Notes: generated by a model not told the origin, from the letters alone. A stretch of 64,000 nt of DNA from Iphione sp. A-MEVVRFRX5 (GCA_976226885.1 OZ320318.1:68572001-68636000); one strand, 5' to 3'. Numbered from the stretch's first letter, positions 45,486 to 60,454 are shown. Translations and numbers: made by a program.

Positions 45486-45489
45486 ATAT
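45486..45489. repeat. Target-site duplication ATAT (second copy 55848-55851)
   Basis: ATAT directly abuts both LTR termini. Confidence 0.9.
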
Positions 45490-45801
45490 TGTAACGTCCG
45501 CTCCGCAAGTAAGACATGACTCCAGTTAAGATAAAGAGGTTTATTCGGTAAGAACAATATAGGCATAAGCAGTGAGCACCAACAGTGAGCACCAAAGGTA
45601 ATCTGAACTGCCCGGGTGGGCCAACTCCCTTATATACCCACCCCCAGTCTCCTCAGCATCCGGGTACCGGACCCCTCATACTCCGCAGCACCCCTTCGAG
45701 TGCCGCACGGGGGCGTGCCGCTGCACCCCACCAGTCCAGTCCACTGTGCCGCAGCACCCCATCGCGTGCCGCGGTGCCGCAGCCACGCAGTGGCTCCAAC
45801 A
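45490..45801 (-). repeat. 3' LTR (312 bp)
   Basis: Direct repeat of 55536-55847, immediately preceded on the element strand by the PPT. Confidence 0.97.
45540..45545 (-). terminator. LTR polyadenylation signal (copy in 5' LTR at 55586-55591)
   Basis: AATAAA on the element strand near the U5 end of each LTR. Confidence 0.7.
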
Positions 45802-45814
45802 TTGCCCTCCCCTT
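45802..45814 (-). promoter_or_regulatory. Polypurine tract
   Basis: Minus strand AAGGGGAGGGCAA directly 5' of the 3' LTR. Confidence 0.85.
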
Positions 45815-45992
45815 AGAGGTTGCTTGTCCCCAAGCAACTTGCTTCCCAACCGTAACTGCAACTGTAACTGTCTGTAACTATTCAACACTCTCAAGTCCTA
45901 GGGCGGTCTGGCGTTCAAGTCCGGTAACACATTTCTCGTAATGTCGCGAATCCAGGGGCAGTCCGATCATCAGCTATATCCGCTTCTCCGAA

Positions 45993-46589
45993 TCACAGGT
46001 AAACCGTCCATGACTCGCGGATGTGGACCTCCACGTTGCCCCCGGCGGTGGGCTCTTCTCGCCACGTGGACAGAAGCCGCACTGGACGGCCCCGCGTTAG
46101 CACCGTCCCGTAGTTGGCGTACCACGTGGCTAGCTCGCTGCCCGGGACCAGCACCCCAAGTCGTCGGAATGTGACGGTCTGCCGGAGGACGACCTTCACC
46201 TGCCCGGCGGTAAGCACCTGCACATCCAAAGCCGAGGAGTTGGAAATGACCATCCACCCGGGTGGTAGGGTGGATTCTGGTGACACCAAGCGTGATGCCG
46301 CCCAGATGTACACGGCGGCCGGGACCTCTTCCTCCGCTCCCGACGAGCCTGACACGTCTTGTAGGGGTGCTCCCGTCCCAGGGGTTGGCCGGGCCGACCA
46401 AGGTACGCTGGGAGGAGCGGGCGGGCCCGAGGGGAGATGTGGTCGCGTTCCCCACCCCCCGGCCCCGGGAGCGCCGGTGGCCCCAGCACCAGGGAGGGGC
46501 CCGAGGGGGGGCGTGCCCCGCGGCCAGGGCCCGGTGTCGGGCCGCGGGGACGCCCTCCTGGCGATGCTGCTGTTGTTGGATCCTCCCAA
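45993..46589 (-). CDS. Orphan ORF near the 3' LTR: Pro/Gly-rich N-part plus a roughly 110-aa globular-looking C-terminal domain, function unknown
   Basis: From 46334 the translation (EEVPAAVYIWAASRL...GWMVISN...VKVVLRQTVTFRRLGVLVPG...WYANYG...VEVHIRESWTVYL) is rich in V/W/Y/I, unlike the GC-shadow ORFs around it. There is no upstream in-frame ATG. Confidence 0.55.
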   Translation of the reverse strand: MGGSNNSSIARRASPRPDTGPWPRGTPPLGPLPGAGATGAPGAGGWGTRPHLPSGPPAPPSVPWSARPTPGTGAPLQDVSGSSGAEEEVPAAVYIWAASRLVSPESTLPPGWMVISNSSALDVQVLTAGQVKVVLRQTVTFRRLGVLVPGSELATWYANYGTVLTRGRPVRLLSTWREEPTAGGNVEVHIRESWTVYL

Positions 46590-47005
46590 GGTCTGACAGG
46601 GGCCACTCCGCGGGGGCTCGCTCTTCCCTCGCCTCCTGAGGTTCCCGGGGTGGATGTGAAAGGGGGCCCCCGTCCGCGGCCCCTCGTGGTTTCTCCAGCC
46701 ATCACAGGCACGCCGGCCCCGCCTTGCTTCTGTCGGGGTCCTTCGGCCGAGTTATCCCCGGTACTGGGGACATGCCTTGGCCTCGAGTCCGCCCTGCGGA
46801 CCAGCGCCCTCTCCCTCGCGAGGGCGGCGGCACCAGCTGGAGATGAAGTGGAGGAGCCCGATGCACCCCCTCCGCCGGCCCCCTCGGCTCTCTAGGCCGC
46901 TCTGGGCTCGCCGTCTCCTCGGTAGCGTCTTCTTGTCGACTTCCAGTCGGTACTTCCTCGGGGGTCGTGTCTGTGATTGGGCTGGCGGCGGGGCTGGTGG
47001 CTGGC

Positions 47006-50000
47006 TCAACCCCCTCTGTTGTGGCCACCTCGTCTCCTGTCGGCCCACTGGGCTCGTGTGTCCGCCCTGGGCCCGACGTCACCTCTTCGCCTCTCCGCCC
47101 CAGGGTGGTTGGAATGTTCTGCTGGCTCTCCGCTGGTGCCTCTACGGTGATCAGGGCTCGCGGCTGAACTGGCCGTGGGGTCGGGAGTCAGGCCGGCCCC
47201 CTCGGTGGCAGTAAGGTTGGAAATCACGCCGCCACCCGGGCTCTTCTCCGTCTCCGCCTTCTTCTGCGTCACGGACGTTGGGACATCTTCCTGCTGCGGA
47301 CTCTCCGGAGGTCTTGCCGCGATTCCCACTGTGTCTGCGGCGTTGGCCCCCAGAGGCACCCTCGGTTCCGTGGGCATGGTTGGCTGGGGACCCTTGGGAT
47401 CGGTGTCTGGCGCGGGTGAGCTGTGCGGGCGCAGGGCCGTGCCGTCGGGGGGGGGCTCCGGCTCCTCCTCGGAGGATTCCTCCTCGAAGAGGGTCGCCAG
47501 CTCCTGGTCCTCCTCACCGTCATCCCCGGGGGCCTGCCCCTCACTCGAGGACCCGTGTGTCACGGTCGGGCCTGTGGTCAAGGGCTCCCCGGCTGGGTCA
47601 GCCTCCGCGGCCCCTCCCAATCTCGGCTTCTTGGCTGGTGACGGCGTGATGGACCCGGGCGGTGTTACAAGGTCCACCACGTCTCCCTCCACCGGCCGTT
47701 CCCAACCTACGCCTAGGCGTTCGTCCAGCCGACGTTCGTCTTCTTCCCATGATGGCGCTCCAATTGGGGTCCCTGGCCTGGGCTCTCTGCGGCGGTCGGG
47801 GGCACCCCTGCCCATGCCAGGGAGGCGACATGGGGGTGACAACCCGACAGACCGGGCCGTGGGGGAGGCCCGGAAGGTCGCTCGCACTCCCACCTGGCGA
47901 GTCCCCGCCGCACTGGAAAGTCCGGACAATCCCTCGCCCCTCGGCTCCACGGTCGTTACCCGGGGCAGGGTCACCTGCAGTTGCGGGGGAGGCTCGTCAG
48001 CCGACGTCTGGCTAGCTGAATCCAGGAACAGTCTGCGTCCCTTGTAGTGCGACGCCCCGGCAGGCAGGTCTATGTTGTCGGGCGTGGCTACTTCTGGCCG
48101 CGGTGGGGGAGCGTCCCGTCCTTCTTTTTCCTGGGAAGAGGGGCGGTCCGGTCTCGCATACGTGCCAGTGGCCAAACGCTGGTCCAGGCGGGGCGGGGGT
48201 CCCGATCCCCCACTGCCCTGACTGTCTCCCGTCGCGGCTCCCGTTGAGCCAGTGTACTGGCCTAGGGCCTCCTGGGGCGAGGGCTCGGCCGTGGAAGGGG
48301 TGCTGCCCTCACCCGCCCCGTCGGGGGTCCCTGTGCTGCGATCCGATGTCTGACCGGAGACGGGGGACCCCCCTCCCTCGCTGTCTGGCGGGATATCGGG
48401 CATGGCCGACGCTGGAGGCCGGGGGGCGCGATGGTCAGGCCCCTCCTCGCGAAGGACGCTGGCGGCCCATTCCTTCACCAAGCGCCGCGCCTCGTCTGTG
48501 GAAGAGTCCCGGCCCGAGCTGCTACTAGGCGGGGGACCCGGTGGGGTCTGCGGTCCTTGGTGTGGGGCATCCACTGAGCGGCCCGTCCCTCGTCCCTCCG
48601 GAGCAACAGTGGAACCCTCGGCGCCAGGAGGGCGCGGCGGTGCCCCCTTATCCGGTTCCGGTGCCCTTGTGGTCGCGGGCGGTGGGGGGGGTCCGGCGCA
48701 ACTGCTCCCACTCTGATCGGCGTCCCCGGTCATGGTCTCCTCCCCACCCAGGGGGCCCGACGACACCGTCCGGGATACCACCCCCGGCGCCCGGGCAGAC
48801 GGCAGGGCACTCTCCTCCAACGAACTGGGAGGGGGATCCCTCCGTTGACGGGTGGACGCTCCCCGTCGCCGTCGGGCCTTCCGTGTCCCCCCGATTGCCT
48901 GGGGTCCCGACGGGGTCGACGTGCCAGTAGACGTCGACAGCTGCGCTGGCGGTGGCTCCGCCGGGTCCTCTGGCTGCCCGGCCGATGGACCGGCTTCGGG
49001 CTCTTGCTGCTGCTGGGTTGCAGCCCCTGGGATGGCCGCAGGCGGTCCCTCTGCTCGGTTGTCGCTACCTTCTTCCGGTGTAGCGGAGCGCCCTCTTTTT
49101 TTACTGCCTCGCTTGGAGGCCCCTCTCTGCGTCGAGAGTCGGCCCACCGCCCTGCGCACTTCTTTCTCCCGGCTCTTCTTTTCCCGGGCCCGGGCTCGCT
49201 GCAGCATCTCCACCTTATCGGCCGGGCAGAGCCGCGGCTCCCCGTAGGTGGGGTTGAGACCCCAGAACCGCAGGTACTGGAGGTCCACCGTCAGGGCCCA
49301 ATCGTTGGGTTCGTGGACCCCGTTCAGGTGTCGCTTCCAGTCGGTGCGCCGGTGGAAGGCTTGCTGCTCGCACTCGGGGTCGGGGCACAACCAGCCCAAT
49401 CCCTCAGGCGCGTGCACGTCTTTCAGGTGGCGGCGCAGGTTGGATGGTTGTGCGAACGTGGACGCACAGCGGGAGCAGCGGTGACGGCGCTCCTCCGGGG
49501 CACCTGGTTCCTCCTCGCCAGAGGACCCCGAGTCGTTGCTCTCAGCGTCGGGTGGGGGGACGTCCTCGGGTACGTCAGCCATGTCGTCGATGCGGCGATG
49601 CGGCACTGGTGGGGTGCAGTTCGCAGGTGGCGCACGGCCGCTCGGTGACGGGACAGCGAGGGCCGCAGCAGCACTGCGGGTCTGGACTGGCCTCGGGTGG
49701 GCAAGGTCCGCCTCTGCGGCGCCGCGGGTCTCTTCGCGTGGACGGCTGGTTGCGGTACTGCGGCGATCTTCTCGTTGTTGGTCGTCGCCGGGTAGCGCCG
49801 CGGCGGCGCCCTGGCACCCGGGCTGCGGCGCTGCGTCTGCTAGATCGCCGCACAGCAGCAGGGGCGCGTCGACTCCACTGGGGCGTGCGAGCCTGCGGCC
49901 ACTACGTCGGAGGGGGATGGTGCGGCTACAGTCCACCCCCGCGCGGCATGCCAGTCGAGCTGCGGAAGAAAGGTACCCATGAGAGTAACGGTTCCAGGTA

Positions 50001-53000
50001 GTTCCCTCCGCAGCGGTGACAGGTTTACCACACATTTCATCGAAAAACAAGGGTGCATCACGACCTTCGCCGCTCACCCAGCGCGGCTTTCTCCCGTTAC
50101 CCCGGTTATCGCCCATGTGTGCGGCTACCAACGGTAGGTTCCTCACCTCGTGCTGCCGCGGCGAATCCCTCGTCGAAGTTAGACGTTGAGCGGCAGCGGC
50201 TTCTCTTCTGTCGCCGCAGCCCCGGGCCGATGTTCTCTGGTCAGTGGGCGTAGGTGCGTTCGGTCGGCGCTCGACACGTGTTGCGTGGATCACGACGCTG
50301 TAGATCGTGTGGTGTCGCTCGGGTGCAACTTCCTGCGGCTCCCCTGGCGCCGCCTGGAGACTAGCGGTCGAATCACGCGGTATTGCGGTTAGCGGGGTGG
50401 GGCCCAGCGCGCTGCCTCTTATACGCTGAGATGCGGCTGCGGCGCCCTCTATCGGCATGGCGTAACCGTGCGGCCTCGCGGCTTCCTCCCGGGCCCGCTG
50501 CACCTCGTCCTGTGCCGCTGCGGCCTCCTGAACGCCGCACGTTACTTGGGGGTCGAGATGGGCGATCTTCAGGCGATCTGCATGAACTACTCTCTGCCGA
50601 TGTCCACGACTGACTCGGTACACCACTTCGGACAACGCCTTCTCCACGGTCCAGGGCCCCTCCCACCAACTCTGCAACTTCGGGGAGATCCCCTTCTTGC
50701 GGGCCGGGGTGAAAAGCCAGACTCGGTCGCCTTCGGCGTACCGTTGGTGCCTCACCCCTCGGTTGTACCAGTCCTTCTGCTGTGCTGCCACACGACTCAG
50801 CTTCTCTGCTACTTTCTCATGCGCCCGGCGGACCTCTTCCGCTATCCGGCTCGCGTACTCCCCACGATCCACCAGGGGTGGGGCCGGGCCACCATAGCGC
50901 AGCTCCACCGGCAGCGTCACCTCTCGGTGCAACAATGTCTGGTTCGGTGATTCCCCCGTGGTGTTGTGGGGGGTGGCCCGGTAGGCGGCCATCACGAACG
51001 GCAGGGCTTGGTCCCAGTCCTTCCGGCGCTCCTCGGCTAGCGTGCCCAGCATGTTCCCCAACGTGCGATTAAATCGCTCGACTACCCCATCACTCTGGGG
51101 GTGGTAGGGGGTGGTTCGGGATTTCTCTATCCCGAGGAGTCGTAGTACTTCCACGAACAGCGCCGCCTCAAAATTACGGCCCTGGTCCGAATGGAGTACC
51201 CGTGGGGGGCCGAAACGGCAGACCACTTCCCTAACGATGATGTCTGCTGTGGCCGCCGCGGTGGCCTCCTCAAGAGGGAACGCCTCCGTCCACTTTGAGA
51301 AGTGGTCGGCCACTACCAGGATGTACCTGTTTCCCCTCTCTGTCACAGGAAGCGGCCCCAAGATGTCTGCCGCCAGCACTTCCCACGGCTCCGACACGGG
51401 GCGTCCTTGCAGGTGGGCCCGGTGGCGCCTCCCCGGCCCTTTCCTTTGTTGGCATGCCTGACAGCACTGGGACCAGCGTGCAACGTCGCGCGACATCCCA
51501 GGCCAAAACCAGTGCCGGCGCAGCGCTGCTCCAGTCTTCTCTGGACCAAGGTGGCCACCCACCGGGCCTGCGTGGGTCTCCTGCCAGAGGCTCTTCTGTA
51601 TGGCCCGGGGGACGTAGGTCTGAGGGAGCCTCTGCCGGTCCTCCTCTTCCCAAAGGCGCACCAGTGCTCCCGATCGGAGCTCGAGTCTCGGGCCTTCCGC
51701 TCTGAGCTGTCTTTCTTCCCAGGTCAATCCAGCCCGCAGCCCAGGGAGGGGCTCCCCTTCCTCCAGCGCTTGGATGAGCTCGCCTGTTGCCGGTTCCATC
51801 CTCTGCATCTGGCACACATCTGGACCACCCTCCACTCCGGCGATGCCCACCGCCGCCGCACTCTCGGACCCCAGGTCTCGCCGGCCGCATTGCTTGCATT
51901 CTTGCCGTGATAGTCCGTCTGCGTTACCATGGCGTTTCCCTGGCCGGTGCGTGATCCGGAGGTCATGACAGAAGACCTCCTCTAGCCACCTGGCCAGCTG
52001 ACCCTGTGGCTCGTGGAAGTTGCACAGCCAGCGCAAGGAATCGTGGTCGGTGCGGATGTCAATGGCCCGGCCCCCCACATAGCATCTAAACTTCCGGAGG
52101 GCGAACACCACCGCCAAGAGTTCCTTCCTCGTAACGCAATAGTTCCGTTCGGGGCGGGTCAGTGTGCGGCTGGCGTAGGCCAGCACCCGCTCACGCCCTT
52201 CCTGTACTTGAGACAACACCGCACCGATGCCAGTGTCGGAAGCATCGGTGTCCAGGAGCAGCTGCCCCACGGGTGTCGGATAACCCAGGATGGGGGTAAT
52301 GGACAGTCGGGCCTTCAGCTGTTCGAAGGCTTCTTGACAGGCCGGGGACCACTCAAACTCCTGCTCTGCTCCAGCCAGGGCATGCAGGGGTGCCGCTAGG
52401 GTGGCAAACCCTTCCACAAAGCTGCGGTAGTACGAGCAGAGTCCTAGAAAGCTTCGAAGTTCTGCTGCACACCGAGGGCGGGGCCATCGCGAGGCGGCCC
52501 TGATCTTCTCTGGGTCGACCCCCACTCCTTCCGCCGAGACCCGATGGCCCAGGTATGCCACTTCTCGCTGGAATAGTTGACACTTGGACGCTTTGACGCG
52601 GAGTCCGGCCTCAATCAGCCTCTGGAATACCGCGCCGAGTCGGGTGCACATCTCCTCCACCGAGCGGCCCAGGACGATCACATCGTCGAGGTACACTAAA
52701 CACTCGGTGCCCACGAGGCCCCGCAGTACGGACTCCATAAGCCGCTCAAAGGTGGAGGGCGTGTTGCAGAGGCCGAACGGCATTACCCGGAACTGGTAAA
52801 GGCCGTTCGGGGTGCACACCGCCGTCTTTTCTGCGTCCGCCGGATCCATCTCGACCTGCCAGTAACCGCTGGCCAGGTCGATCGCCGAAAAATACTGGCT
52901 ACCCTGCAGAGCATCGAGGGTGTCGTCTATCCGGGGGAGGGGGAACGCGTCCTTCTTAGTGATGGCGTTGAGTTTGCGATAGTCGATGCAGAACCGTAGC

Positions 53001-54226
53001 CCCCCATCCTTCTTTTGTACGAGCACCAGCGGAGATGCCCATGGACTTGTGGAGGGCTCCAGCACCCCCTTCTGCACCATCTTGTCTACCTCCGCGTGAA
53101 CTGCCTCCCTCTTGGGAGGGGGAAGGCGCCTTGCTCGTTGACGAATGGGTGGGTGACCCTGGGTGTCGATGCGATGTCGGACTTCCGGGGTACGCCCGAG
53201 CGGACCACTGGCTGTCTGGAAGACTTCGCGGTGGCACCGTAGCATGGCCGCTATCTGCTGCCGCTCCGGATCGGTGGTCTCTACCGGTAGTTGCCCTAGC
53301 AAGTACTCTACCGCTTGCTCTTGCTCTGCCTCCACCTGCTCCTGGGGAGCCTCGGGTGGTCCAAGCACCGCGGCGACCTGACGGAGCTCGGCCAGCCGGG
53401 TTCCCTCGAAGACTCGTGTCGCCTGGGAGCCGGGATTCCACACTGGAACCCACACCCTCCCCTCCTGGGGTCGTACCAGCGCGCGAGCCACTCGTAGTCC
53501 CGAGCGTGACTCAAACCTGGCGTCAGGCTCCGCTAACCCTTCCAAAGAGTCGACCCCTCCTTGACACGCCTTCGCCTGAACCCAGCCTATTCCTCCCGCA
53601 GGAATCTCTTGACTGCCGCTGGCTCGCACTGTGGCCGCCCATTCACGGTTGCCGGGCCAAACAGTGACCGTGGCCTCCCTCGTATCTACTGTTGCCGCCC
53701 ACCGATCCAGCCAGTCCAAGCCAAGTAGACCCGGTATCTCCATCTCTACCACGATGGCCACCACCTGTAGGGTGACCCCTGCGAACCGAACTTCGCAGTC
53801 CACCAGCCCCAATACTTGTAGGGCGCTGCCATCCACCCCGAAGACTCGTGCCCCCGCCGGGTCCAACAACACCCCCTGTAGTTCTCGGTAGGTCCGTGCC
53901 GAGAGGAGGGAAGCGGAGGCTCCTGTGTCCACCAGCCAGTCCACCACCTGTCCGCCGACTTCTCCCTCCAACAATACTCCCCGGCACCCCGTCCTCCTCC
54001 TTCCCTGCAGTACCCTCCTGGTCTCCCCCTCGACGGCGGCGACCATCGCCTCCAAGGGGGGTCCCAGGCCGGGTGGTACGGAATCGGACGCCGCCCGCCC
54101 TACTGAGCCGGGGCGGGCGGCTTCTCGTTTTCCGGCTGCGCTGGAGCAGCGTCGGCGGTGTTCTCGGCTGCCTTCCGTACCGGGCAGTCCCGCTTGAAGT
54201 GCCCGGGCTCCTTGCAGTAAAAGCAT
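47006..54226 (-). CDS. pol: pol polyprotein (PR, RT, RNase H, integrase) with a roughly 1180-aa C-terminal extension containing two C2H2 zinc fingers
   Basis: Protease LVDTGAS (D codon at 53929), RT YLDD (52682-52693), RNase H DTDASDTGIGAVL, integrase HHCC plus D,D-E core (DILGP, HSDQG, ERFNRTL), and IN C-terminus ...GPW...VHADRLK (about 50570). The frame stays open to 47006. Translation probably enters by frameshift at about 54130. Confidence 0.95.
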   Translation of the reverse strand: MLLLQGARALQAGLPGTEGSREHRRRCSSAAGKREAARPGSVGRAASDSVPPGLGPPLEAMVAAVEGETRRVLQGRRRTGCRGVLLEGEVGGQVVDWLVDTGASASLLSARTYRELQGVLLDPAGARVFGVDGSALQVLGLVDCEVRFAGVTLQVVAIVVEMEIPGLLGLDWLDRWAATVDTREATVTVWPGNREWAATVRASGSQEIPAGGIGWVQAKACQGGVDSLEGLAEPDARFESRSGLRVARALVRPQEGRVWVPVWNPGSQATRVFEGTRLAELRQVAAVLGPPEAPQEQVEAEQEQAVEYLLGQLPVETTDPERQQIAAMLRCHREVFQTASGPLGRTPEVRHRIDTQGHPPIRQRARRLPPPKREAVHAEVDKMVQKGVLEPSTSPWASPLVLVQKKDGGLRFCIDYRKLNAITKKDAFPLPRIDDTLDALQGSQYFSAIDLASGYWQVEMDPADAEKTAVCTPNGLYQFRVMPFGLCNTPSTFERLMESVLRGLVGTECLVYLDDVIVLGRSVEEMCTRLGAVFQRLIEAGLRVKASKCQLFQREVAYLGHRVSAEGVGVDPEKIRAASRWPRPRCAAELRSFLGLCSYYRSFVEGFATLAAPLHALAGAEQEFEWSPACQEAFEQLKARLSITPILGYPTPVGQLLLDTDASDTGIGAVLSQVQEGRERVLAYASRTLTRPERNYCVTRKELLAVVFALRKFRCYVGGRAIDIRTDHDSLRWLCNFHEPQGQLARWLEEVFCHDLRITHRPGKRHGNADGLSRQECKQCGRRDLGSESAAAVGIAGVEGGPDVCQMQRMEPATGELIQALEEGEPLPGLRAGLTWEERQLRAEGPRLELRSGALVRLWEEEDRQRLPQTYVPRAIQKSLWQETHAGPVGGHLGPEKTGAALRRHWFWPGMSRDVARWSQCCQACQQRKGPGRRHRAHLQGRPVSEPWEVLAADILGPLPVTERGNRYILVVADHFSKWTEAFPLEEATAAATADIIVREVVCRFGPPRVLHSDQGRNFEAALFVEVLRLLGIEKSRTTPYHPQSDGVVERFNRTLGNMLGTLAEERRKDWDQALPFVMAAYRATPHNTTGESPNQTLLHREVTLPVELRYGGPAPPLVDRGEYASRIAEEVRRAHEKVAEKLSRVAAQQKDWYNRGVRHQRYAEGDRVWLFTPARKKGISPKLQSWWEGPWTVEKALSEVVYRVSRGHRQRVVHADRLKIAHLDPQVTCGVQEAAAAQDEVQRAREEAARPHGYAMPIEGAAAASQRIRGSALGPTPLTAIPRDSTASLQAAPGEPQEVAPERHHTIYSVVIHATRVERRPNAPTPTDQRTSARGCGDRREAAAAQRLTSTRDSPRQHEVRNLPLVAAHMGDNRGNGRKPRWVSGEGRDAPLFFDEMCGKPVTAAEGTTWNRYSHGYLSSAARLACRAGVDCSRTIPLRRSGRRLARPSGVDAPLLLCGDLADAAPQPGCQGAAAALPGDDQQREDRRSTATSRPREETRGAAEADLAHPRPVQTRSAAAALAVPSPSGRAPPANCTPPVPHRRIDDMADVPEDVPPPDAESNDSGSSGEEEPGAPEERRHRCSRCASTFAQPSNLRRHLKDVHAPEGLGWLCPDPECEQQAFHRRTDWKRHLNGVHEPNDWALTVDLQYLRFWGLNPTYGEPRLCPADKVEMLQRARAREKKSREKEVRRAVGRLSTQRGASKRGSKKRGRSATPEEGSDNRAEGPPAAIPGAATQQQQEPEAGPSAGQPEDPAEPPPAQLSTSTGTSTPSGPQAIGGTRKARRRRGASTRQRRDPPPSSLEESALPSARAPGVVSRTVSSGPLGGEETMTGDADQSGSSCAGPPPPPATTRAPEPDKGAPPRPPGAEGSTVAPEGRGTGRSVDAPHQGPQTPPGPPPSSSSGRDSSTDEARRLVKEWAASVLREEGPDHRAPRPPASAMPDIPPDSEGGGSPVSGQTSDRSTGTPDGAGEGSTPSTAEPSPQEALGQYTGSTGAATGDSQGSGGSGPPPRLDQRLATGTYARPDRPSSQEKEGRDAPPPRPEVATPDNIDLPAGASHYKGRRLFLDSASQTSADEPPPQLQVTLPRVTTVEPRGEGLSGLSSAAGTRQVGVRATFRASPTARSVGLSPPCRLPGMGRGAPDRRREPRPGTPIGAPSWEEDERRLDERLGVGWERPVEGDVVDLVTPPGSITPSPAKKPRLGGAAEADPAGEPLTTGPTVTHGSSSEGQAPGDDGEEDQELATLFEEESSEEEPEPPPDGTALRPHSSPAPDTDPKGPQPTMPTEPRVPLGANAADTVGIAARPPESPQQEDVPTSVTQKKAETEKSPGGGVISNLTATEGAGLTPDPTASSAASPDHRRGTSGEPAEHSNHPGAERRRGDVGPRADTRAQWADRRRGGHNRGG
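49313..49477 (-). other. Tandem C2H2 zinc fingers within the pol extension
   Basis: CSRC-ASTFAQPSNLRR-H-LKDV-H (canonical C-x2-C-x12-H-x4-H with conserved F and L) and CPDPEC-EQQAFHRRTDWKR-H-LNGV-H. Confidence 0.85.
54090..54133 (-). promoter_or_regulatory. Putative -1 programmed ribosomal frameshift signal (gag to pol)
   Basis: G_GAA_AAC in the gag frame at 54133-54127, a 5-nt spacer, then a perfect 11-bp stem GCCGCCCGCCC/GGGCGGGCGGC with a 10-nt loop. pol is in the -1 frame. Confidence 0.75.
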
Positions 54227-55518
54227 CCTTCGTTGTTCGCGCGCTTCCCGCCTCGCCTAACGGGGGAAGCGGTTGTTGCGGGCTGCTCCAGTAGCTTGGA
54301 CAGGAGTTGCTCAATGCGCTCCAATCCGGTCGACGTCTTGGCGTCGTGGCTGGCCGCCGCCACCTCTTGAGATTCGGCCTGTGCCGCGTGGACACGCGTC
54401 GCCCCAGCCCCCGGGCTGCGCTCCTTCTCGGCGCGGTGGTACGACTCGGCCAAGAGCGCCTCCGAGATGGCTGCCTGAAAGGACCGGGCCTTAGCTTGCA
54501 CGACCCATCTCCGGCAACGCTCTTCGCGGAGAGCCGAGACGAAGGCATCCTTGCACATTCGATCCAACCAGGAGCCCTCGGCCTCCGGGTAGGCCTGCCG
54601 TACCAATCTTTCAACTTCCTCGGCCAGTTTCTGGACGTCCTCGTCCTTCTTCTGGCGACGCTGTTTTAACTCCTGCTCATAATACTGGGCTCGATCCTCC
54701 GACTGGAACCTCTGTCACAGGGTCTCGACAATAGTCGAGAACGCTCCCTCAGCGGATACATCCACATTGGCTGAGCGGAGGGCGGATTGTGCCGAGCCCC
54801 TGAGACACACGCTGAGTTGCAGCGCCTGTTCCGCTTCGTCCCATCGGTTGGCCCGGGCCACCAGGGAGAAGTGATGCAGGTATTCCGCAAGGGGGACTCC
54901 TCCACTGAAGGACTCCGGCTTAACATGGAACCGGCGTGTCGGGGGTACCGGAGGGGCAGGCCGGAGAGCGGACTGGATCTCATCCATCAGCCCCCGCATC
55001 AGCTGGACGGCGTTTCCTTGTCCGCCCCCGGCCAGGCTCGGGTTGGGCGGGGGAGGGCCAGCCGGCGGGGTGGCTGGCGGCGGGGGAGCCGGGGCAGCGG
55101 GGTCGCGAGGGTTCGCCGTCCCATCTGGCTGTCCTCCTACCCCGGTGGGGGCTCCGGGCGTGGTGTCGTCACTGCCCCTCCCACGGGGCGAGCCGGCCCC
55201 GCTGGGAACAGAAGAATCCTCACTGCTGCTGTGGCTCGACGAGTGGTCTTCGTCCGACAGTGCCGTGCCGCTGCGGCGCAAAGGGGTGCGGCGGCACGGT
55301 GGGGTGCTGCGGCGCAGTGGGGTGCTGCAGCACGGTGGGGTGCCGCGGCCCCGCGGCACGCGATGTGCCCCGAGCTGCACCTCCTCGTCCTCAGTGCTGG
55401 AGTCTTCCCTCGTGGGGGACCACTCGTGGGGAACGGTACATCCCACGTGTCCCCCCCGGGGGGCAGGGCGTGTCCCCCTTCCTCGCGGTTGCGGTGCCCC
55501 GGTGGGTGATTCCTCCAT
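54100..55518 (-). pseudogene. gag: gag (about 472 codons) interrupted by one in-frame TGA at 54715-54717
   Basis: ATG at 55518. Capsid-like segment KPESFSG...EYLHHFSLVARANRW...LSVCLRGSA; the same frame continues past the TGA (ETL*QRFQSEDRAQYY...) to the zinc knuckle CFYCKEPGHFKRDC and TAG at 54100-54102. Confidence 0.9.
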
Positions 55519-55534
55519 CCCACCGCTGCCACCA
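55517..55534 (-). promoter_or_regulatory. Primer-binding site, tRNA-Leu type
   Basis: Minus strand TGGTGGCAGCGGTGGGAT starts 1 nt after the 5' LTR. It is complementary to the ...AUCCCACCGCUGCCACCA 3' end of metazoan tRNA-Leu (AAG/TAG type), recalled from known tRNA sequences. Confidence 0.85.
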
Positions 55535-55535
55535 A

Positions 55536-55847
55536 TGTAACGTCCGCTCCGCAAGTAAGACATGACTCCAGTTAAGATAAAGAGGTTTATTCGGTAAGAA
55601 CAATATAGGCATAAGCAGTGAGCACCAACAGTGAGCACCAAAGGTAATCTGAACTGCCCGGGTGGGCCAACTCCCTTATATACCCACCCCCAGTCTCCTC
55701 AGCATCCGGGTACCGGACCCCTCATACTCCGCAGCACCCCTTCGAGTGCCGCACGGGGGCGTGCCGCTGCACCCCACCAGTCCAGTTCACTGTGCCGCAG
55801 CACCCCATCGCGTGCCGCGGTGCCGCAGCCACGCAGTGGCTCCAACA
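55536..55847 (-). repeat. 5' LTR (312 bp)
   Basis: TGTAACG...CCAACA on +. Identical to 45490-45801 except one C/T difference (ccagtccactg vs ccagttcactg) by manual comparison. Confidence 0.97.
55676..55682 (-). promoter_or_regulatory. LTR TATA box (copy in 3' LTR at 45630-45636)
   Basis: TATATAA on the element strand, about 90 nt upstream of the LTR AATAAA, giving a U3-R-U5 layout. Confidence 0.7.
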
Positions 55848-58260
55848 ATATCATTAGATATAGTCAACCCATTCTGCCTCCCATTCTATCATTCTTCGGG
55901 AAAAGAAATAGGAAGGTGATTTGCGGGTATCAATGTTGGAACACTGTGTTATGTAAAGTACGGACTAGGAGCATACAGGAACCAAGTAAACCATTTTAAT
56001 CTAAAAAAACGACTTCTTTGAGGAAGGTGAAAAAAATCTCACTTGATCATCTTCTTCTGAGAATTCATAGAATTTTATTGTGGTTGTAATTCTAGTTCTT
56101 TAATCCCAATAGATTAATCAGCATCCACTAACTGGTAGACCGTACAACCATTTTTGCTAACATTCAATGATGGTGCGACGGGGAAATCAGATAAAATATG
56201 TTTTTGATTGTTAAGATTCTTTTAATGGTATATAGGCCAATTAATACGGTCGTTTTCAAATTTGTACACATCAGATGTGATCCCAGGAAAAGAAGCCATG
56301 GTGTGTAACTAAAGGATGTTATTCTAGTGCTTGATAAATAGTAGCAACGCAAATAAAACGTGAAACAGGTTTTACCACTGTTTATGTTGCTATACAATCT
56401 GTAGAATACAAACTCATGAGCTACTTCAGGTAACCTGGCACTTAAGGCATTTAAAGTTTTACCTTTTTCATGAAAATATAAGAATTCATTTGTCAGAAGA
56501 CTAAATCGTTATGTGTTTTGAATCAAAGGTGACTGATTTGGAAAATATATATTAGATCATAGTGAGACCGAATTGATTGAAAGATAAATAGACTATAATT
56601 TACGAAAGGGATACCAGCGATTGTTTCCTAACAATCAGTGGAACAATCATTTCAAGAGAAACATAGAACCTCGTCATGAATGAATTGTAATAAGGTGCAG
56701 TTACATATTCCAATTCATATCGTGCCCTCTAAACCGAAGAACAGATTTTCAAAATGACAACTTATTTTCTGTAATCAGACTGTTAATCTTTTTTACACTG
56801 ATGGAGTCATTGACCACACATTTAAGAAATCCCGTTATCAGAAGGGCAAGTTTCCATTGAAATGTTTGTGCATTGTATCTGTTTGCATTATGTTGCATCA
56901 TCATCAACTATAAATGTGTATTTTAATACAGAGGGCTGACGTTGACTTGCATGAGGGTGTTGCATGAAATTGTTGCGTTAAGGTGTTGTTTCATTGTGTT
57001 TCTGTATGTAGGAGGGTTTTTTTTAGTTATTTGCATAAAAATGATAAAGATGAGCCACAACTCGGGGAACTGTGCTGTTTCTATGTGAATAGTTGATCAA
57101 ATTCAGCCGTAACTCTGGACATTGCGTGGTTTTATGCTAATGATATGCAAACTAAGTAAATTTCAATCATGTAAATGTGTACATGTACATGTATCTGGTC
57201 CTAATGTTTTTGCAACACCCTATTTGTGCATTTCCACGTGTTTAGTTGGAATTAACAAGGAGTGTCAAAAGAGGAAAAGGACAAAACACAATGCAATCCT
57301 AAATGCATCAACAAGACACAGCTATGGGTGCTCTCTTATTCATTATAATATGCTGGTAAAAAATGCAATGCAAACAAAATGCAGCACATGAACACATGCA
57401 TGGATGCTAGTACTGAAATGGAAAGTGGTGAACCAATTTTCTAGCAGCATGATGTTCCTTTGAAGTATGTCCATATGAAGTTAGAGATTTGGCCATTGCA
57501 TTTCCTAATACCCACATATAGACATATTGTCTAACCACTGCAGATGAAAAATATTTTGATTCTTTTGTAGTTGCTCGAACATTTCTTATATGAAGGGTGC
57601 TGCCCGAACATGTAGATGTATCTATATAATTGTCTTCCAGAGGTAACAAGGCGTACAGTTTATCCTACATAGAATATGAGTGAGGTGTCTTTTTAATGTA
57701 CAAGTGTTTATGCTATTGGATGCACTGTTCTAACACTCCTGTCGTGATAATCGGTACACTGTCCCATAGAAACGATTGTTCTCAGGTGGGTTTGAATTCT
57801 AGACCATTCCCGGGTGGATATCTATAAGATGAAGTATCATTGGTTTTACAAAAATCAAAATGGTGGTTCCTTGACAACTCGATTCACAAGTTTATGAGGA
57901 TAATACGATTAATATACAGACAGAAACGATTTACAAATGCTTCCTACATAAAGAGAAAATAATAATAAACAAACTTGGAGCATATGATACATACATATTG
58001 TTTCCCAATTCCAACATAATGTCTATATTTTCATTTCAACAAGATGAAAGACACCACGTGATTTGAAAACTAACTCTCGCACCAACGTGACTTGGGGTGA
58101 GATTTACTATCAGCCAATGAAATTGTTGTGTCTAATGTAAACATTCAAAATGGCATTCTTGGCAGCTTCAGTGCTAGAATACGATGTAAGTTTGATCAAA
58201 ATGTATTGAAATTATGCAGATAATTCAATCTCTCTGTAATAAATCGTTGTCAGAACAGTG

Positions 58261-58609: not shown

Positions 58610-60454
58610 TGAATATGTGTACATGGACGAGGTGTGAGGATGCCAAAAGGATCAAAAGGAAATTCCTAAATATGCAAGTAAGAAAGGCAATGCGCAAAGC
58701 ATGAAGGACGTAGGAGAGTGAGAAGTTAAAACATGCGGGGAACGAAGCCACTAGGATATGGCATGTGCTCAACGATGTTCTGGGACATGCACAGAGAGAG
58801 GTGGTCCTGCCCATGTGGAGTGCATGTGATCATACCAATGATGGATCACCCGCTGAAGACTTCAATGCTTACTTCATAGTGGAGGTGGAACGACTGGCGC
58901 CACAACCTGTTGCGAATGACTGGGTTCAAATGATGGGCATGCCTCGCATTGACGTTAAACCAACAATTTCAGAAGTGCTCAAACCCTATGTTGTCAAGCA
59001 GGGTTTGACCCAGGCTTCTGGTATCCTCAATGTCCTAACGGTAGTCCTCAAGCCATTACTACATCTCACGTTGGATTTCATTGCCATACTGTTCACACAG
59101 ATTTTTTGGAAGATCACTAGGGTAACCCTTGTCTTTAAGAAGGGGGACTAGAGCCAGCTTGGAAACTATCACCCTGTCTTGATCCTCCCCTTGCCTGGGA
59201 AGGTATTTGAGGTGTGGTATGTAGGTGACCTCATGCAACAGCTAGAAGAATGGAAGTTTTGGGGCAATGAACAGCATGGATTCCATCCAGGGCAGAGCAC
59301 GGAGACAGCAATCATCAATCTCGTGTGCAAGGTGCAAGAGGCACTCAATGCTGGACAATATTGCTGCCTCCTGGCTCTGGACCTGTGCAAGGCTTTTCAC
59401 CTTGTTCCATCAATTGGGGTATTCTCTTGCCTGGAGACTGCTGGTGCTAGTGCCTCTGGCCGAAGGCTCATATCGAGCTATTTTGAAGGTCACAAGCAGT
59501 TCGTAAGATGTAGAGGTATCGATTTGAACATATGTGATGTCAACCATGGGGTTTCACAGGGCTCGGTCTTTGGACCAAGCACCTTCTCCATTGTTATTGA
59601 TGAAGTGGTGAGTAGGTTTCCACCAGGCGCAGAACTCACTATGTATGGGGATGACCTTATGGTGATGACTTCTACACCTGACCTCCTAAGGCTTCGGGGG
59701 TCACTCAACTGGCAGCAGAACAGGTAGTGACCTGGTGCAGTGAGGCTGGATTGCTATTCAGTGTCAACAAATGTGCCCATATGGTACTGGGAAAAGCAGC
59801 AGATACCCCACTGGATATCAAGCTACAGGATGTGACACTCAAGGTGGTGTAGAAAATAAAGCTACTTGGCTGCATGATTGACTCACATCTAAAGTTTCAG
59901 CCACTGATCAATGACACTGAAGCCAAGATGTGGATGGCCTCATCAAAGAGAGTTGACTGGGGAGAGTCAAGACCCTGTTGCCCATAGGGATAAGGGTTAG
60001 ACTCTTCAAGGCACTGGTTATACCTCACCTCTACTACGCATCTGCACTGCTGTATGGGGTGTTCAAGGCAGATAAATGCAATCTGCAAGCACACCTAAAC
60101 CAGGGCCTTAGGGTGGCGGTTCTGATGAGTAAAAGGTTGTCTGCGAAGCAGTTAGCAGAGAAGCATGGCATTGGCAGGGTACAGGACATCATAGAGAGAA
60201 AAGCCATCGCTGCCATCCATCGTCAAGTGCACCTAAACTTGCTACCTCAAGATGTCCCAACAAGGACCAGGGTAGGCACCTCACACCGAGTGAATGTGTC
60301 TAGACCCAGGAGCTTGAAGTTCACTAGAAGCCTCGTGTACGGCACTGTAGCAGCTTGGAATTCCCTGCCTACATGCTTGAAGTCCCTCCAGAAGCCATCC
60401 AAAGCAGCCTGGGACGAGATAGCCAGAGAATGTCAACACCTAGACCTGGGTTGA
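58610..60454 (+). pseudogene. Decayed non-LTR retrotransposon (CR1/L2-group LINE) ORF2 reverse transcriptase, 5'-truncated
   Basis: KKGD*SQLGNYHPV..LPLPGKVFE, QHGFHPGQSTETA, LALDLCKAF, GVSQGSVFGP, YGDD, and C-terminal LFKALVIPHLYY...AWNSLP. Contains stops and frameshifts; the 5' boundary is approximate. Confidence 0.9.

Follow-up and report, generated by a model that had tools for sequence, protein, structure and literature searches.

The window, a 64,000-nt stretch of Iphione sp. DNA, contains a young, nearly intact Ty3/mdg4 (Gypsy) LTR retrotransposon in which the pol reading frame continues without a stop for 1,186 codons past integrase and encodes a pair of C2H2 zinc fingers within this extension. 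The tail most likely helps the element to find or hold DNA, and our preferred reading, which we put at somewhat under an even chance, is that it acts as an integrase-linked DNA or chromatin tether rather than as a separately expressed regulator. The Gypsy integrase-tail-finger design is real and apparently undescribed; no prior description was found (Repbase and Dfam were not covered).

The element is identified as Ty3/mdg4 (Gypsy) by its LTRs, target-site duplication (TSD), primer-binding site, polypurine tract, gag with a CCHC motif and the order protease, reverse transcriptase, RNase H, integrase (Table 1), and the Gypsy assignment of a preliminary description of this DNA agrees with the LTR pair, TSD and domain order. 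The two LTRs are identical at 311 of 312 positions (1 mismatch), the GC content is 63-70% in the element compared to ~40% in the surrounding DNA, and no second copy of the element was found within the window. The start of the primer-binding site in the relatives L009 and L011, TGGTGACAG, resembles that of the window element. Gag is broken by one in-frame internal stop, with no frameshift; its zinc knuckle matches Pfam zf-CCHC at 6.3e-7, and a tblastn comparison with the gag proteins of four relatives gave one HSP in one frame. The pol frame is offset by -1 relative to gag, as it is in five relatives. Integrase was recognized by Integrase_H2C2 (9.3e-17, residues 872-929), rve (2e-13, 946-1043) and Integrase_p58_C (1e-7, 1190-1220), the last of which closes with VHADRLK and places the integrase end near nt 50567, which differs by 17 nt from the ~50550 proposed earlier. 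A block shared by the C-terminal tails of the relatives had no detectable counterpart at 45802..47005 or elsewhere in the window element.

Table 1 Features of the retrotransposon, in window coordinates
Feature	Position	Strand	Description
Complete Ty3/mdg4 (Gypsy) LTR retrotransposon	45490..55847	-	10,358 bp; LTR pair, TSD, PBS, PPT
TSD ATAT	55848..55851	.	Second copy 45486-45489; read from flanks
5' LTR	55536..55847	-	312 bp, TG...CA ends
Primer-binding-site (PBS) region	55518..55535	-	Begins TGG immediately 3' of 5' LTR
gag	54100..55518	-	472 codons, single frame; CCHC zinc knuckle close to C-terminus
pol-plus-tail ORF	47006..54226	-	2406 aa counted from first ATG, fully open
Aspartic protease	53702..53968	-	aa 87-175; Pfam gag-asp_proteas 6.3e-8
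Reverse transcriptase	52538..53020	-	aa 403-563; Pfam RVT_1 7.1e-34
RNase H	51977..52351	-	aa 626-750; Pfam RT_RNaseH_2 3.9e-31, RT_RNaseH 9.7e-31
Integrase	50567..51613	-	aa 872-1220; H2C2 zinc-binding, catalytic core, C-terminal p58_C (GPY/F-type)
Linker, integrase to finger 1	49478..50566	-	363 codons, little conserved, predicted disordered, stop-free
In-frame ATG	49580..49582	-	Putative start, 35 codons upstream of finger 1; 858-aa product
C2H2 finger 1	49412..49477	-	C-x2-C-x12-H-x4-H; AF2 pLDDT 91-95
C2H2 finger 2	49313..49387	-	C-x4-C-x13-H-x4-H; AF2 pLDDT 77-89
Basic helix, NLS-like clusters KKSR and KRGSKKR	49094..49225	-	Directly after fingers
Further basic cluster RKARRRR	48863-48883	-	In tail
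Rest of tail	47009..49093	-	P/A/G/R/S-rich; predicted disordered except short helices
GC-rich internal region, 1.2 kb	45802..47005	-	ORF stop to 3' LTR
Polypurine tract (PPT)	45802-45814	-	Abuts 3' LTR
3' LTR	45490..45801	-	312 bp

Three other identities were considered and rejected. An env gene of the Errantivirus type is excluded as there is no separate third ORF, the tail is predicted to fold only into the fingers and a few helices, and its maximum Kyte-Doolittle 19-mer score is 0.64; the earlier judgment that the tail is not env, made on the lack of a visible signal peptide or transmembrane segment, stands. A chromovirus is excluded by the lack of any Chromo (PF00385) match, with E<=0.1 as the limit for the complete protein and E<=10 for the tail. 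Gmr1-like elements are the donors of the vertebrate SCAN domain. In these elements integrase lies before RT/RNase H (PR-IN-RT-RH) (10.1101/2025.03.03.638093), whereas the order here is PR-RT-RH-IN. Pfam SCAN scored 24.1-25.8 bits in gag of two related lineages, just below the threshold of 27, and was not detected in the pieces of the window gag.

The open stretch after integrase, previously estimated at ~1180 codons, has no stops in the pol frame; the two remaining sense frames contain 28 and 30, and the antisense frames contain 11-16. When sequences of equal composition were simulated 2,000 times with a Markov-1 model, no open run in any of six frames exceeded 721 codons, as opposed to the 1,181 observed, indicating that the open frame is not due to chance. 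The tail is enclosed by the LTR pair and the TSD and therefore belongs to the element. The linker between integrase and finger 1 has no stops, while its two off-frames have 10 and 12 (chance ~1.4e-5). Disorder is predicted for ~85% of the tail; 69% of its residues are disorder-promoting and its complexity is low. In the AF2 models the linker has a pLDDT of ~30, and the single predicted folded unit consists of the two fingers followed by the basic helix (tail residues 443-472, pLDDT 85-88 in the whole-tail model). A phmmer search of 1.84 billion proteins matched only tail residues 353-417, to C2H2 proteins (best 1.4e-11), with no similarity outside the fingers and no homologue for the remaining tail at 47009..49093.

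The coordinates and features given in the preliminary description were all confirmed. The computed finger pair occupies exactly its interval 49313-49477, and the in-frame ATG at 49582-49580, 35 codons before finger 1 and opening 858 aa, and the basic segment after the fingers were likewise recovered. Finger 1 is an exact fit to C-x2-4-C-x12-H-x3-5-H, while finger 2 is longer by one residue and is preceded by a conserved inter-finger linker, G-W-x-C-P. Of the two checks proposed earlier for the fold, the structural one succeeded, with AF2 predicting two beta-beta-alpha units that also reappear in the whole-tail model, and the Pfam one fell just short, with zf-C2H2 at 23.4 bits (E=7.7e-5) on the 111-aa window piece, below its cutoff of 25.2; the relative L009 exceeded this cutoff with 28.2 bits. 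When the pair is aligned with finger pairs of cellular proteins, none of the eight zinc ligands varies. The window segment alone retrieved ZBTB17 (6.4e-7) and CTCF (1.3e-5) in a PDB sequence search, and a profile built from element-borne modules only retrieved DNA-binding C2H2 proteins, including ZNF568 (1.7e-15) and, over both fingers, CTCF. The best Foldseek matches are tandem C2H2 DNA-binding structures (ZFAT, Tramtrack and CTCF; probability 0.99-1.0, with weak E-values of 6e-3 to 0.1). The earlier assignment to the DNA-binding type is in agreement with profile, structure prediction and Foldseek alike, and classical DNA-binding-type C2H2 fingers are supported by sequence and model. The canonical helix positions -1, 2, 3 and 6 are occupied by Q, S, N and R in finger 1 and by R, T, D and R in finger 2, from which we infer that the fingers bind DNA.

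Relatives of the element form a clade of seven lineages from metagenome assemblies (bootstrap 100), to which the window element is sister (bootstrap 63). Its tie to this clade has only moderate support, and its finger module scored 46.7 bits against the profile compared to 40.2 for the best cellular protein. The two-finger module lies 260-450 residues past integrase in 7/7 readable lineages; siblings lacking the fingers would have refuted the preliminary description. The open frame from integrase to the fingers, which it proposed to check, was present in five lineages and absent in L007 and L009, where the fingers are out of the pol frame with 6 and 2 pol-frame stops, respectively, before them. 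Decay or poor assembly may account for these two (L009 has an LTR identity of 95.5% and comes from a 3x long-read contig), with a separate ORF as the alternative. In the five in-frame lineages, at 48-75% pol identity, the linker of 264-413 codons contains no stops compared to 4-13 per off-frame, with a chance probability of 1e-5 to 5e-4 per lineage and ~1e-20 jointly.

Selection was measured on a related family rather than on that of the window element, for which no sibling copies were present in the collections searched, including the 1.84 billion proteins. In this sibling family a 2315-aa ORF is kept in 5/5 copies, and pN/pS is ~0.35 in the tail (22 codon columns with amino-acid changes versus 21 that are synonymous-only; neutrality rejected at P=7e-4) and 0.06 in pol, indicating that the tail is under purifying selection there. 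With the fingers kept by the relatives and the tail under selection, the design passes the refuting test set in the preliminary description. Among four tails, 12 of the 58 finger-module residues are invariant, compared to 25 of 1,123 others (P=4e-8), and the zinc ligands show zero variation among eight sibling sequences. The unit of fingers and basic helix was probably acquired by an ancestor and has been kept by the whole clade. That the tail is a functionless passenger, made of GC-rich sequence and a host exon captured long ago and open by accident, is very improbable and already disfavoured: its predicted disorder and low complexity, the restriction of homologues to the fingers, a protein-level evolution ~6x faster than that of pol and the missing C-terminal block of the relatives would suit such a passenger, but the frame is open far above chance in five lineages, the pN/pS differs significantly from neutral, and the fingers with all their ligands are retained across lineages with pol identity down to 48-62%.

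In the preferred mechanism, a -1 frameshift from gag would yield a Pol polyprotein that continues past the integrase C-terminal domain, and the tail, co-translated with integrase, would enter the particle together with Pol. Tail and integrase would then form a nucleic-acid or chromatin anchor that helps the integration complex to enter the nucleus and to be tethered, with an effect on the site or efficiency of integration, a role and position comparable to those of the chromodomain of chromoviruses. Because the linker to the fingers is kept open, translation probably runs through from integrase. We infer that the fingers act with integrase and affect integration. The basic clusters and the confidently predicted basic helix after the fingers count for a tether. 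Two fingers alone give little specificity, the protease of the element could cleave the tail from integrase, and the out-of-frame fingers of L007 and L009, the only moderate link of the window element to the clade and the lack of the predicted recognition site in all three LTRs also count against a tether.

It is possible, though on balance unlikely, that the tail or its 858-aa finger part is instead a separate accessory nuclear protein, produced by splicing, internal initiation or protease cleavage and regulating the element's own expression or RNA handling through LTR transactivation, anti-silencing or export of genomic RNA. There is precedent in CERV of Cer1 from C. elegans, which is nuclear, carries an NLS and a cysteine-rich putative zinc-binding loop, is made from a spliced mRNA and is required for genomic-RNA export (PMC10309623). 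Like the tail, CERV is encoded between integrase and the 3' LTR by a large region that is not env, is lineage-specific and evolves fast; it differs in its five-exon spliced mRNA sharing gag exons, its proposed C4 zinc motif and its folded H, M and G domains, and a search of 1.84 billion proteins revealed no similarity of the tail to CERV or to anything beyond the fingers. The ATG upstream of finger 1 and the different frame of the fingers and pol in L007 and L009 also favor a separate protein, as does the succession of acidic stretch, fingers and basic region, which is transcription-factor-like and is also seen in small cellular two-finger proteins. In the window element and L009, the LTRs are enriched in the motif GCGGAG (a post hoc test), but it is absent from the L011 LTR, and the site predicted by the recognition code is absent from all three LTRs examined (window element, L009 and L011). 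A tether is favored over a purely separate protein because the linker is open in five divergent lineages without conserved sequence, which an internal start alone would not require.

The same motifs bear on another reading, that the ligand of the fingers is nucleic acid of the element itself, namely the ends of reverse-transcribed DNA or the genomic RNA, and that they serve as a cofactor of integration or packaging and not as a target chooser. GCGGA motifs lie at the extreme end of the window LTR, the site of integrase action, the fingers would be co-translated with integrase, and both RNA and DNA are possible ligands of C2H2 fingers, with TFIIIA complexes of both kinds among the fold matches. 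We consider this reading improbable, as the motif observation is post hoc and fails in L011, fingerless Gypsy elements manage without such a cofactor, and the LTRs are not conserved between lineages whereas finger 1 has the same +6 Arg and +2 Ser in four of them.

Among known systems, chromoviruses and R2 elements are precedents for the preferred mechanism. Integration is directed by the chromodomain that chromoviruses have at the C-terminal end of integrase (Gao et al. 2008, as cited in PMC9289625). Chromoviruses likewise carry a nucleic-acid- or chromatin-reading module in frame after integrase that is inherited clade-wide, but the chromodomain directly follows GPY/F while the module here is a C2H2 pair 360 residues beyond integrase in a disordered tail. 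R2 elements recognize their target with their own zinc fingers and a Myb motif (PMC11204384) and thus share a C2H2-type module within the retrotransposon's own enzyme polypeptide. They are, however, non-LTR elements that use target-primed reverse transcription without integrase or LTRs, and their N-terminal fingers serve a single rDNA target. In yeast Ty1 and Ty5 the integrase C-terminal region is long and poorly ordered and contains an NLS as well as a short determinant of tethering. This resembles the predicted disordered region with NLS-like clusters found here, but these elements are Copia-type and bind host proteins through short peptide motifs, and are not known to use a folded DNA-binding domain; tethering is mentioned in PMC5408687. 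A Ty3/Gypsy lineage of orchids has fixed an extra conserved domain, AlkB-type 2-ODD, which was called a rare event (PMC9289625). There, the additional domain is in a separate ORF, differs in fold and function (RNA demethylase), and occurs in a plant host.

The gain of domains at the C-terminal end of integrase is already known, as with chromodomains, and artificial integrase-zinc-finger fusions have been built to steer integration. A more speculative proposal, which we regard as doubtful at present, is that the clade represents a natural integrase-zinc-finger fusion in which integrase bears a sequence-reading C2H2 module and changes of the recognition residues between lineages shift the integration sites. 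If true, it would be the natural counterpart of the artificial fusions and, beside the chromodomain, a second, independent solution to target choice by LTR elements. Three copies are inserted in TA-repeat sites. These sites are no evidence for an action of the fingers, since Drosophila elements of the errantivirus group, which have no fingers, likewise prefer TATA or ATAT (PMC5408687).

The frame that runs on past the integrase belongs to an LTR retrotransposon that is complete and very young and that stands out in the GC profile of the window as a 10-kb island of 63-70% GC within DNA of ~40% GC. The edges of the island are two 312-bp direct repeats with one differing position, starting with TG, ending with CA and flanked by a 4-bp duplication. 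In the orientation of the element, a primer-binding-type sequence starting with TGG lies immediately internal to the upstream LTR and a purine tract lies immediately ahead of the downstream LTR. The gag reading frame spans 472 codons and encodes a CCHC knuckle; in this copy it is interrupted by a single internal in-frame stop, without any frameshift. Relative to gag, pol is shifted to the -1 frame, an offset shared by five relatives, and it is open throughout its 2406 residues from the first ATG. Pfam matches follow the order protease, reverse transcriptase (RT), RNase H, integrase zinc-binding domain, integrase core and integrase C-terminal domain p58_C, the last ending at residue 1220, which is the canonical order of Ty3/mdg4 elements. 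Chromovirus membership was rejected, as Pfam gave no chromodomain match, and the element is a Ty3/mdg4 member on every structural criterion tested. Given the stop in gag, this copy may rely on gag supplied by a sibling, though pol and the tail that follows it are fully open and the LTRs are one base apart. No second copy or fragment was present elsewhere in the 64-kb window, an exact-protein look-up of the ORF returned no record, and no sibling of this family was found among the protein collections searched.

Outside the element, no informative ORF was found in the window except a decayed RT remnant, probably of a non-LTR LINE, ~3 kb from the 5′ LTR, and tRNA and Rfam scans of the window gave no matches. 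Between the stop of the long ORF and the 3′ LTR lies an unusually long GC-rich stretch of 1.2 kb, whose mechanically called ORFs of 161-198 aa have no detected homology. Recently active GC-rich Gypsy elements within an AT-richer genome have been described in the rattlesnake (PMC9447483). The gag of relatives from two lineages gave Pfam SCAN matches of 24.1-25.8 bits against a threshold of 27, spanning 75 of 90 profile positions, and the domain order of those elements is the canonical protease-RT-RNase H-integrase. The Gmr1-like family, reported as SCAN donors, is defined by an integrase that precedes RT (10.1101/2025.03.03.638093); membership in it, an early lead from these sub-threshold scores, was dropped because the integrase does not precede RT here.

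Positions of the element, its parts and features of related copies (plain numbers, window; L-numbers, DNA loci of relatives)
Feature	Position	Strand	Description
LTR retrotransposon, complete, very young	45490-55847	-	LTR pair, TSD, PBS-type sequence, purine tract
Window insertion	45486-45489, 55848-55851		TSD ATAT
Window LTR searched for motifs	55536-55847
gag	54100-55518	-	One frame
pol with tail	47006-54226	-	One ORF
Finger pair	49313-49477	-	Two C2H2 fingers
ORF stop to 3′ LTR	45802-47005	-	GC-rich stretch
RT remnant, decayed	58714-60451	+	Pfam RVT_1 1.1e-17 on 59152-59724
SCAN-like gag of relatives	L003:824-2173, L004:178-1158, L007:1607-3025		Sub-threshold matches
C-terminal tail block of relatives	L007:79-453		Also in L001, L002, L003
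L011 insertion	L011:2375-2414, 12221-12260		(AT)8 upstream, TATAC downstream
L009 insertion	L009:13517-13556		ATATATATT downstream; 5′ boundary unclear
L009 LTR searched for motifs	L009:13088-13516
Tandem array	L011:12317-13277		33-nt unit, ~30 copies

As the preliminary description had noted, the pol frame stays open after the integrase, for 1,186 further codons beyond residue 1220, and the positions that it gave for two fingers, a basic stretch and an in-frame ATG were all exact. Over this tail, no stop interrupts the pol frame, while the remaining two sense frames contain 28 and 30 stops and the antisense frames 11-16; in 2,000 composition-matched simulations, the longest stop-free stretch was 721 codons, whichever frame was read. 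These results exclude a chance open frame in GC-rich DNA. A neighbouring host gene or a nested insertion was rejected, as the LTR pair and the target-site duplication enclose the tail, which has no internal repeats and shares its layout with the relatives. An env or errantivirus-type identity was likewise rejected, in agreement with the first reading of the sequence, since the tail has neither a transmembrane nor a signal-like segment, and no 19-residue window of it comes near transmembrane hydrophobicity.

Several independent tests, on sequence and on predicted structure, agree that both fingers of the window are real C2H2 fingers. For the two checks named in the preliminary description, Pfam zf-C2H2 scored the finger segment slightly below threshold (23.4 vs 25.2 bits), and AlphaFold2 predicted a beta-beta-alpha unit for each finger (pLDDT 91-95 and 77-89). 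A phmmer search of the 1,181-residue tail against 1.84 billion representative proteins gave 58 matches, all confined to residues 353-417, which are the two fingers; most of these had several repeated matched stretches, typical of multi-finger proteins, and the exhaustive search returned no tail homologue outside the fingers. When the fingers are aligned with those of cellular two-finger proteins, none of the eight zinc ligands varies. Among solved structures, the finger segment alone matched the fingers of ZBTB17 and CTCF, and a profile built from element-borne modules only matched ZNF568 (1.7e-15) and CTCF across both fingers. The top Foldseek matches were tandem DNA-binding finger domains (ZFAT, Tramtrack, CTCF), and the matches in a viral structure library were free-standing C2H2 proteins, mostly from giant viruses, with no retroelement polyprotein among them.

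The closest pol proteins share 44-49% identity with that of the element along their full length, and the relatives that have names are from arachnids, fishes, frogs, a nematode, a lancelet and a sponge. Some relatives from metagenome assemblies are unusually long, with post-integrase tails rich in P, A, R and S and a finger segment that can be aligned to that of the window. By pol identity to one member, these proteins form a group (P0194 and P0128, 75%; P0151 and P0147, 62%; P0098, 60%; P0212, 59%), and the other proteins aligned full length to that member reach at most ~51%. A neighbour-joining tree with bootstrapping, built for the RT-RNase H-integrase core on a subset of the sequences, grouped seven relatives, all from metagenome assemblies, into one clade in all 100 replicates and placed the window element as its sister in 63 of them. 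A profile made from the modules of six other lineages, with the window left out, ranked the window module first of 59 at 46.7 bits; the other 58 were the best C2H2 matches to the window among the 1.84 billion proteins, and the top of these scored 40.2 bits. We read the window element as a probable early-branching member of a single finger-bearing lineage. The margins are modest (63 of 100 replicates; 46.7 vs 40.2 bits), and the window module may instead have been acquired independently of the clade. A word-based search with the tail of one relative, P0096, matched only itself and missed even the known relative P0128, which makes it uninformative.

The preliminary description had looked to relatives for retention of the fingers, and the module was found in seven of the seven lineages with readable sequence beyond the integrase, three of these detections being independent of the training set of the profile. 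In five lineages (the window, L001, L002, L003 and L010), the fingers are in the pol frame with zero stops from the start of pol, and the linker of 264-413 codons between the integrase and finger 1, the sequence of which is not conserved, has 0 stops, compared to 4-13 per off-frame, at a chance of 1e-5 to 5e-4 per lineage and ~1e-20 jointly. The frame, which was to be checked for being always open, is thus open in these five lineages; in two others, L007 and L009, the fingers lie in a different frame from pol, with 6 and 2 stops, respectively, in the pol frame upstream of them. With LTRs that are 95.5% identical, L009 is an older copy, and it lies on a 3x long-read contig, so decay or errors of assembly would suffice as an explanation, though neither is proven. 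The fingers are the only part conserved throughout the four full tails, with 12 invariant columns in the 58-residue module against 25 in the other 1,123 residues (P = 4e-8). Features common to the module are the zinc ligands, the linker G-W/Y-x-C-P between the fingers, a Trp that follows finger 2 and, in the helix of finger 1, a shared Ser at +2 and Arg at +6.

Selection on the tail was measured in the P0151 family, a relative of the window's family, which has five full-length members, each 2315 aa, from different samples; DNA for four was used. In pol, 15 codon columns were synonymous only and 3 changed an amino acid (pN/pS ratio 0.06), while the tail had 21 and 22 (ratio 0.35), different from neutrality (P = 7e-4) and from pol (P = 0.02). 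These ratios indicate that the tail is constrained in this family, far less than the enzymes are, and that the tail is carried as a functionless passenger is very unlikely. Purifying selection, which was to be checked on the fingers themselves, was thus seen for the whole tail in a relative's family. The 72-codon finger segment taken alone has 5 replacements and 1 synonymous change, numbers too small for further reading; all replacements leave the zinc ligands intact, and the majority are conservative or sit between ligands.

The rest of the tail consists of 69% disorder-promoting residues, and when AlphaFold2 modelled the tail in full, pLDDT was below 50 for 1,011 of 1,181 residues; the alignment behind this model had four sequences only, so low pLDDT is weak as sole evidence of disorder, and the composition agrees with it. 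The confident parts are the finger module, an adjoining basic helix (pLDDT 85-88) and two isolated helices, and nothing else. The tails of L007 and of the three nearest relatives share a conserved C-terminal block of ~100 residues, Trp-rich and with TTRY-like motifs, that has no Pfam match and was not found in the 3′ end of the window element by tblastn or profile (best domain E = 0.2). In a neighbouring Gypsy-like group, fish and frog gene models (P0073, P0084, P0100, P0086 and others) also continue for 800-2,200 aa past the integrase, in tails that lack both Pfam domains and C2H2 motifs; these models may be gene-model chimeras, or long integrase tails may be commoner than assumed.

The tail is encoded in frame with the integrase, the frame is kept across lineages, and the tail is under purifying selection. 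Its sole conserved folded part appears to be a classical two-finger module beside basic, NLS-like clusters. Our tentative proposal, held with somewhat less than even confidence, is that the finger tail acts with the integrase as an anchor to DNA or chromatin: it would be translated within Gag-Pol, travel together with the integrase, bind DNA or chromatin, and in this way affect nuclear entry or target capture. The main rival, a possible but rather less probable one, is that the tail works as a separately produced nuclear regulator, for which CERV of Cer1 is a concrete precedent (PMC10309623); the conserved open linker speaks against a purely separate protein, but the two lineages with fingers out of frame, and the ATG within the frame, keep this rival in play. 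The anchor and the separate regulator are compatible if the protease of the element frees the tail. A further reading, in which the tail is a built-in cofactor that binds the element's own nucleic acid, is improbable.

Site choice by LTR elements and retroviruses is usually explained by the binding of integrase to host tethering proteins or, in chromoviruses, by a chromodomain that reads histone marks. To our knowledge, non-LTR elements such as R2 were previously the only known cases in which an element's own polyprotein reads DNA directly. If the anchor proposal is true, a clade-wide, integrase-linked C2H2 module would be a third route to integration-site choice. The window element resembles chromoviruses functionally in having a module appended to the integrase, R2 elements in carrying its own fingers, which R2 uses for target recognition (PMC11204384), and Cer1 in having a coding region after the integrase that is not env. 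LTR retrotransposons are described as rarely fixing an extra conserved domain (PMC9289625), and searches of the literature gave no account of a Gypsy integrase that carries C2H2 fingers; undescribed here means absent from the protein, structure and literature resources searched, with Repbase and Dfam not covered. The feature is genuine, has been inherited and is subject to selection, and it is a variant of a known theme, domain accretion at the C-terminus of integrase. It would also be a case of a retroelement with a ~1,000-residue disordered region kept under measurable selection, and it defines a family that allows finger-bearing relatives to be compared with fingerless ones in their insertion landscapes. 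Eight lineages lay unannotated in metagenome assemblies, where such long GC-rich ORFs could pass for cellular genes.

AT-rich DNA surrounds two more complete copies, L009 and L011, as it does the copy in the window; L009 adjoins an APE-type LINE, and its flanks have no similarity to the window. TA-dinucleotide sequence is present at the insertion sites of all three complete copies, and the clade looks like it has a TATA/ATAT-type target preference. Elements of the Drosophila errantivirus group, which lack such fingers, also prefer TATA or ATAT (PMC5408687), so the preference cannot be credited to the fingers and was rejected as a sign of finger-based targeting. A crude hexamer site predicted from the canonical recognition positions was absent from the LTRs of the window, L009 and L011. 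A near variant picked post hoc, GCGGAG, occurs twice in the window LTR (0.15 expected), with both copies at its extreme end, also a post hoc observation, and six times in the L009 LTR (0.30 expected), and is absent from that of L011. This enrichment was given no weight, because the motif had been noticed before testing. In L011, a P0151-family copy, a tandem array lies ~100 nt downstream of the 3′ LTR.
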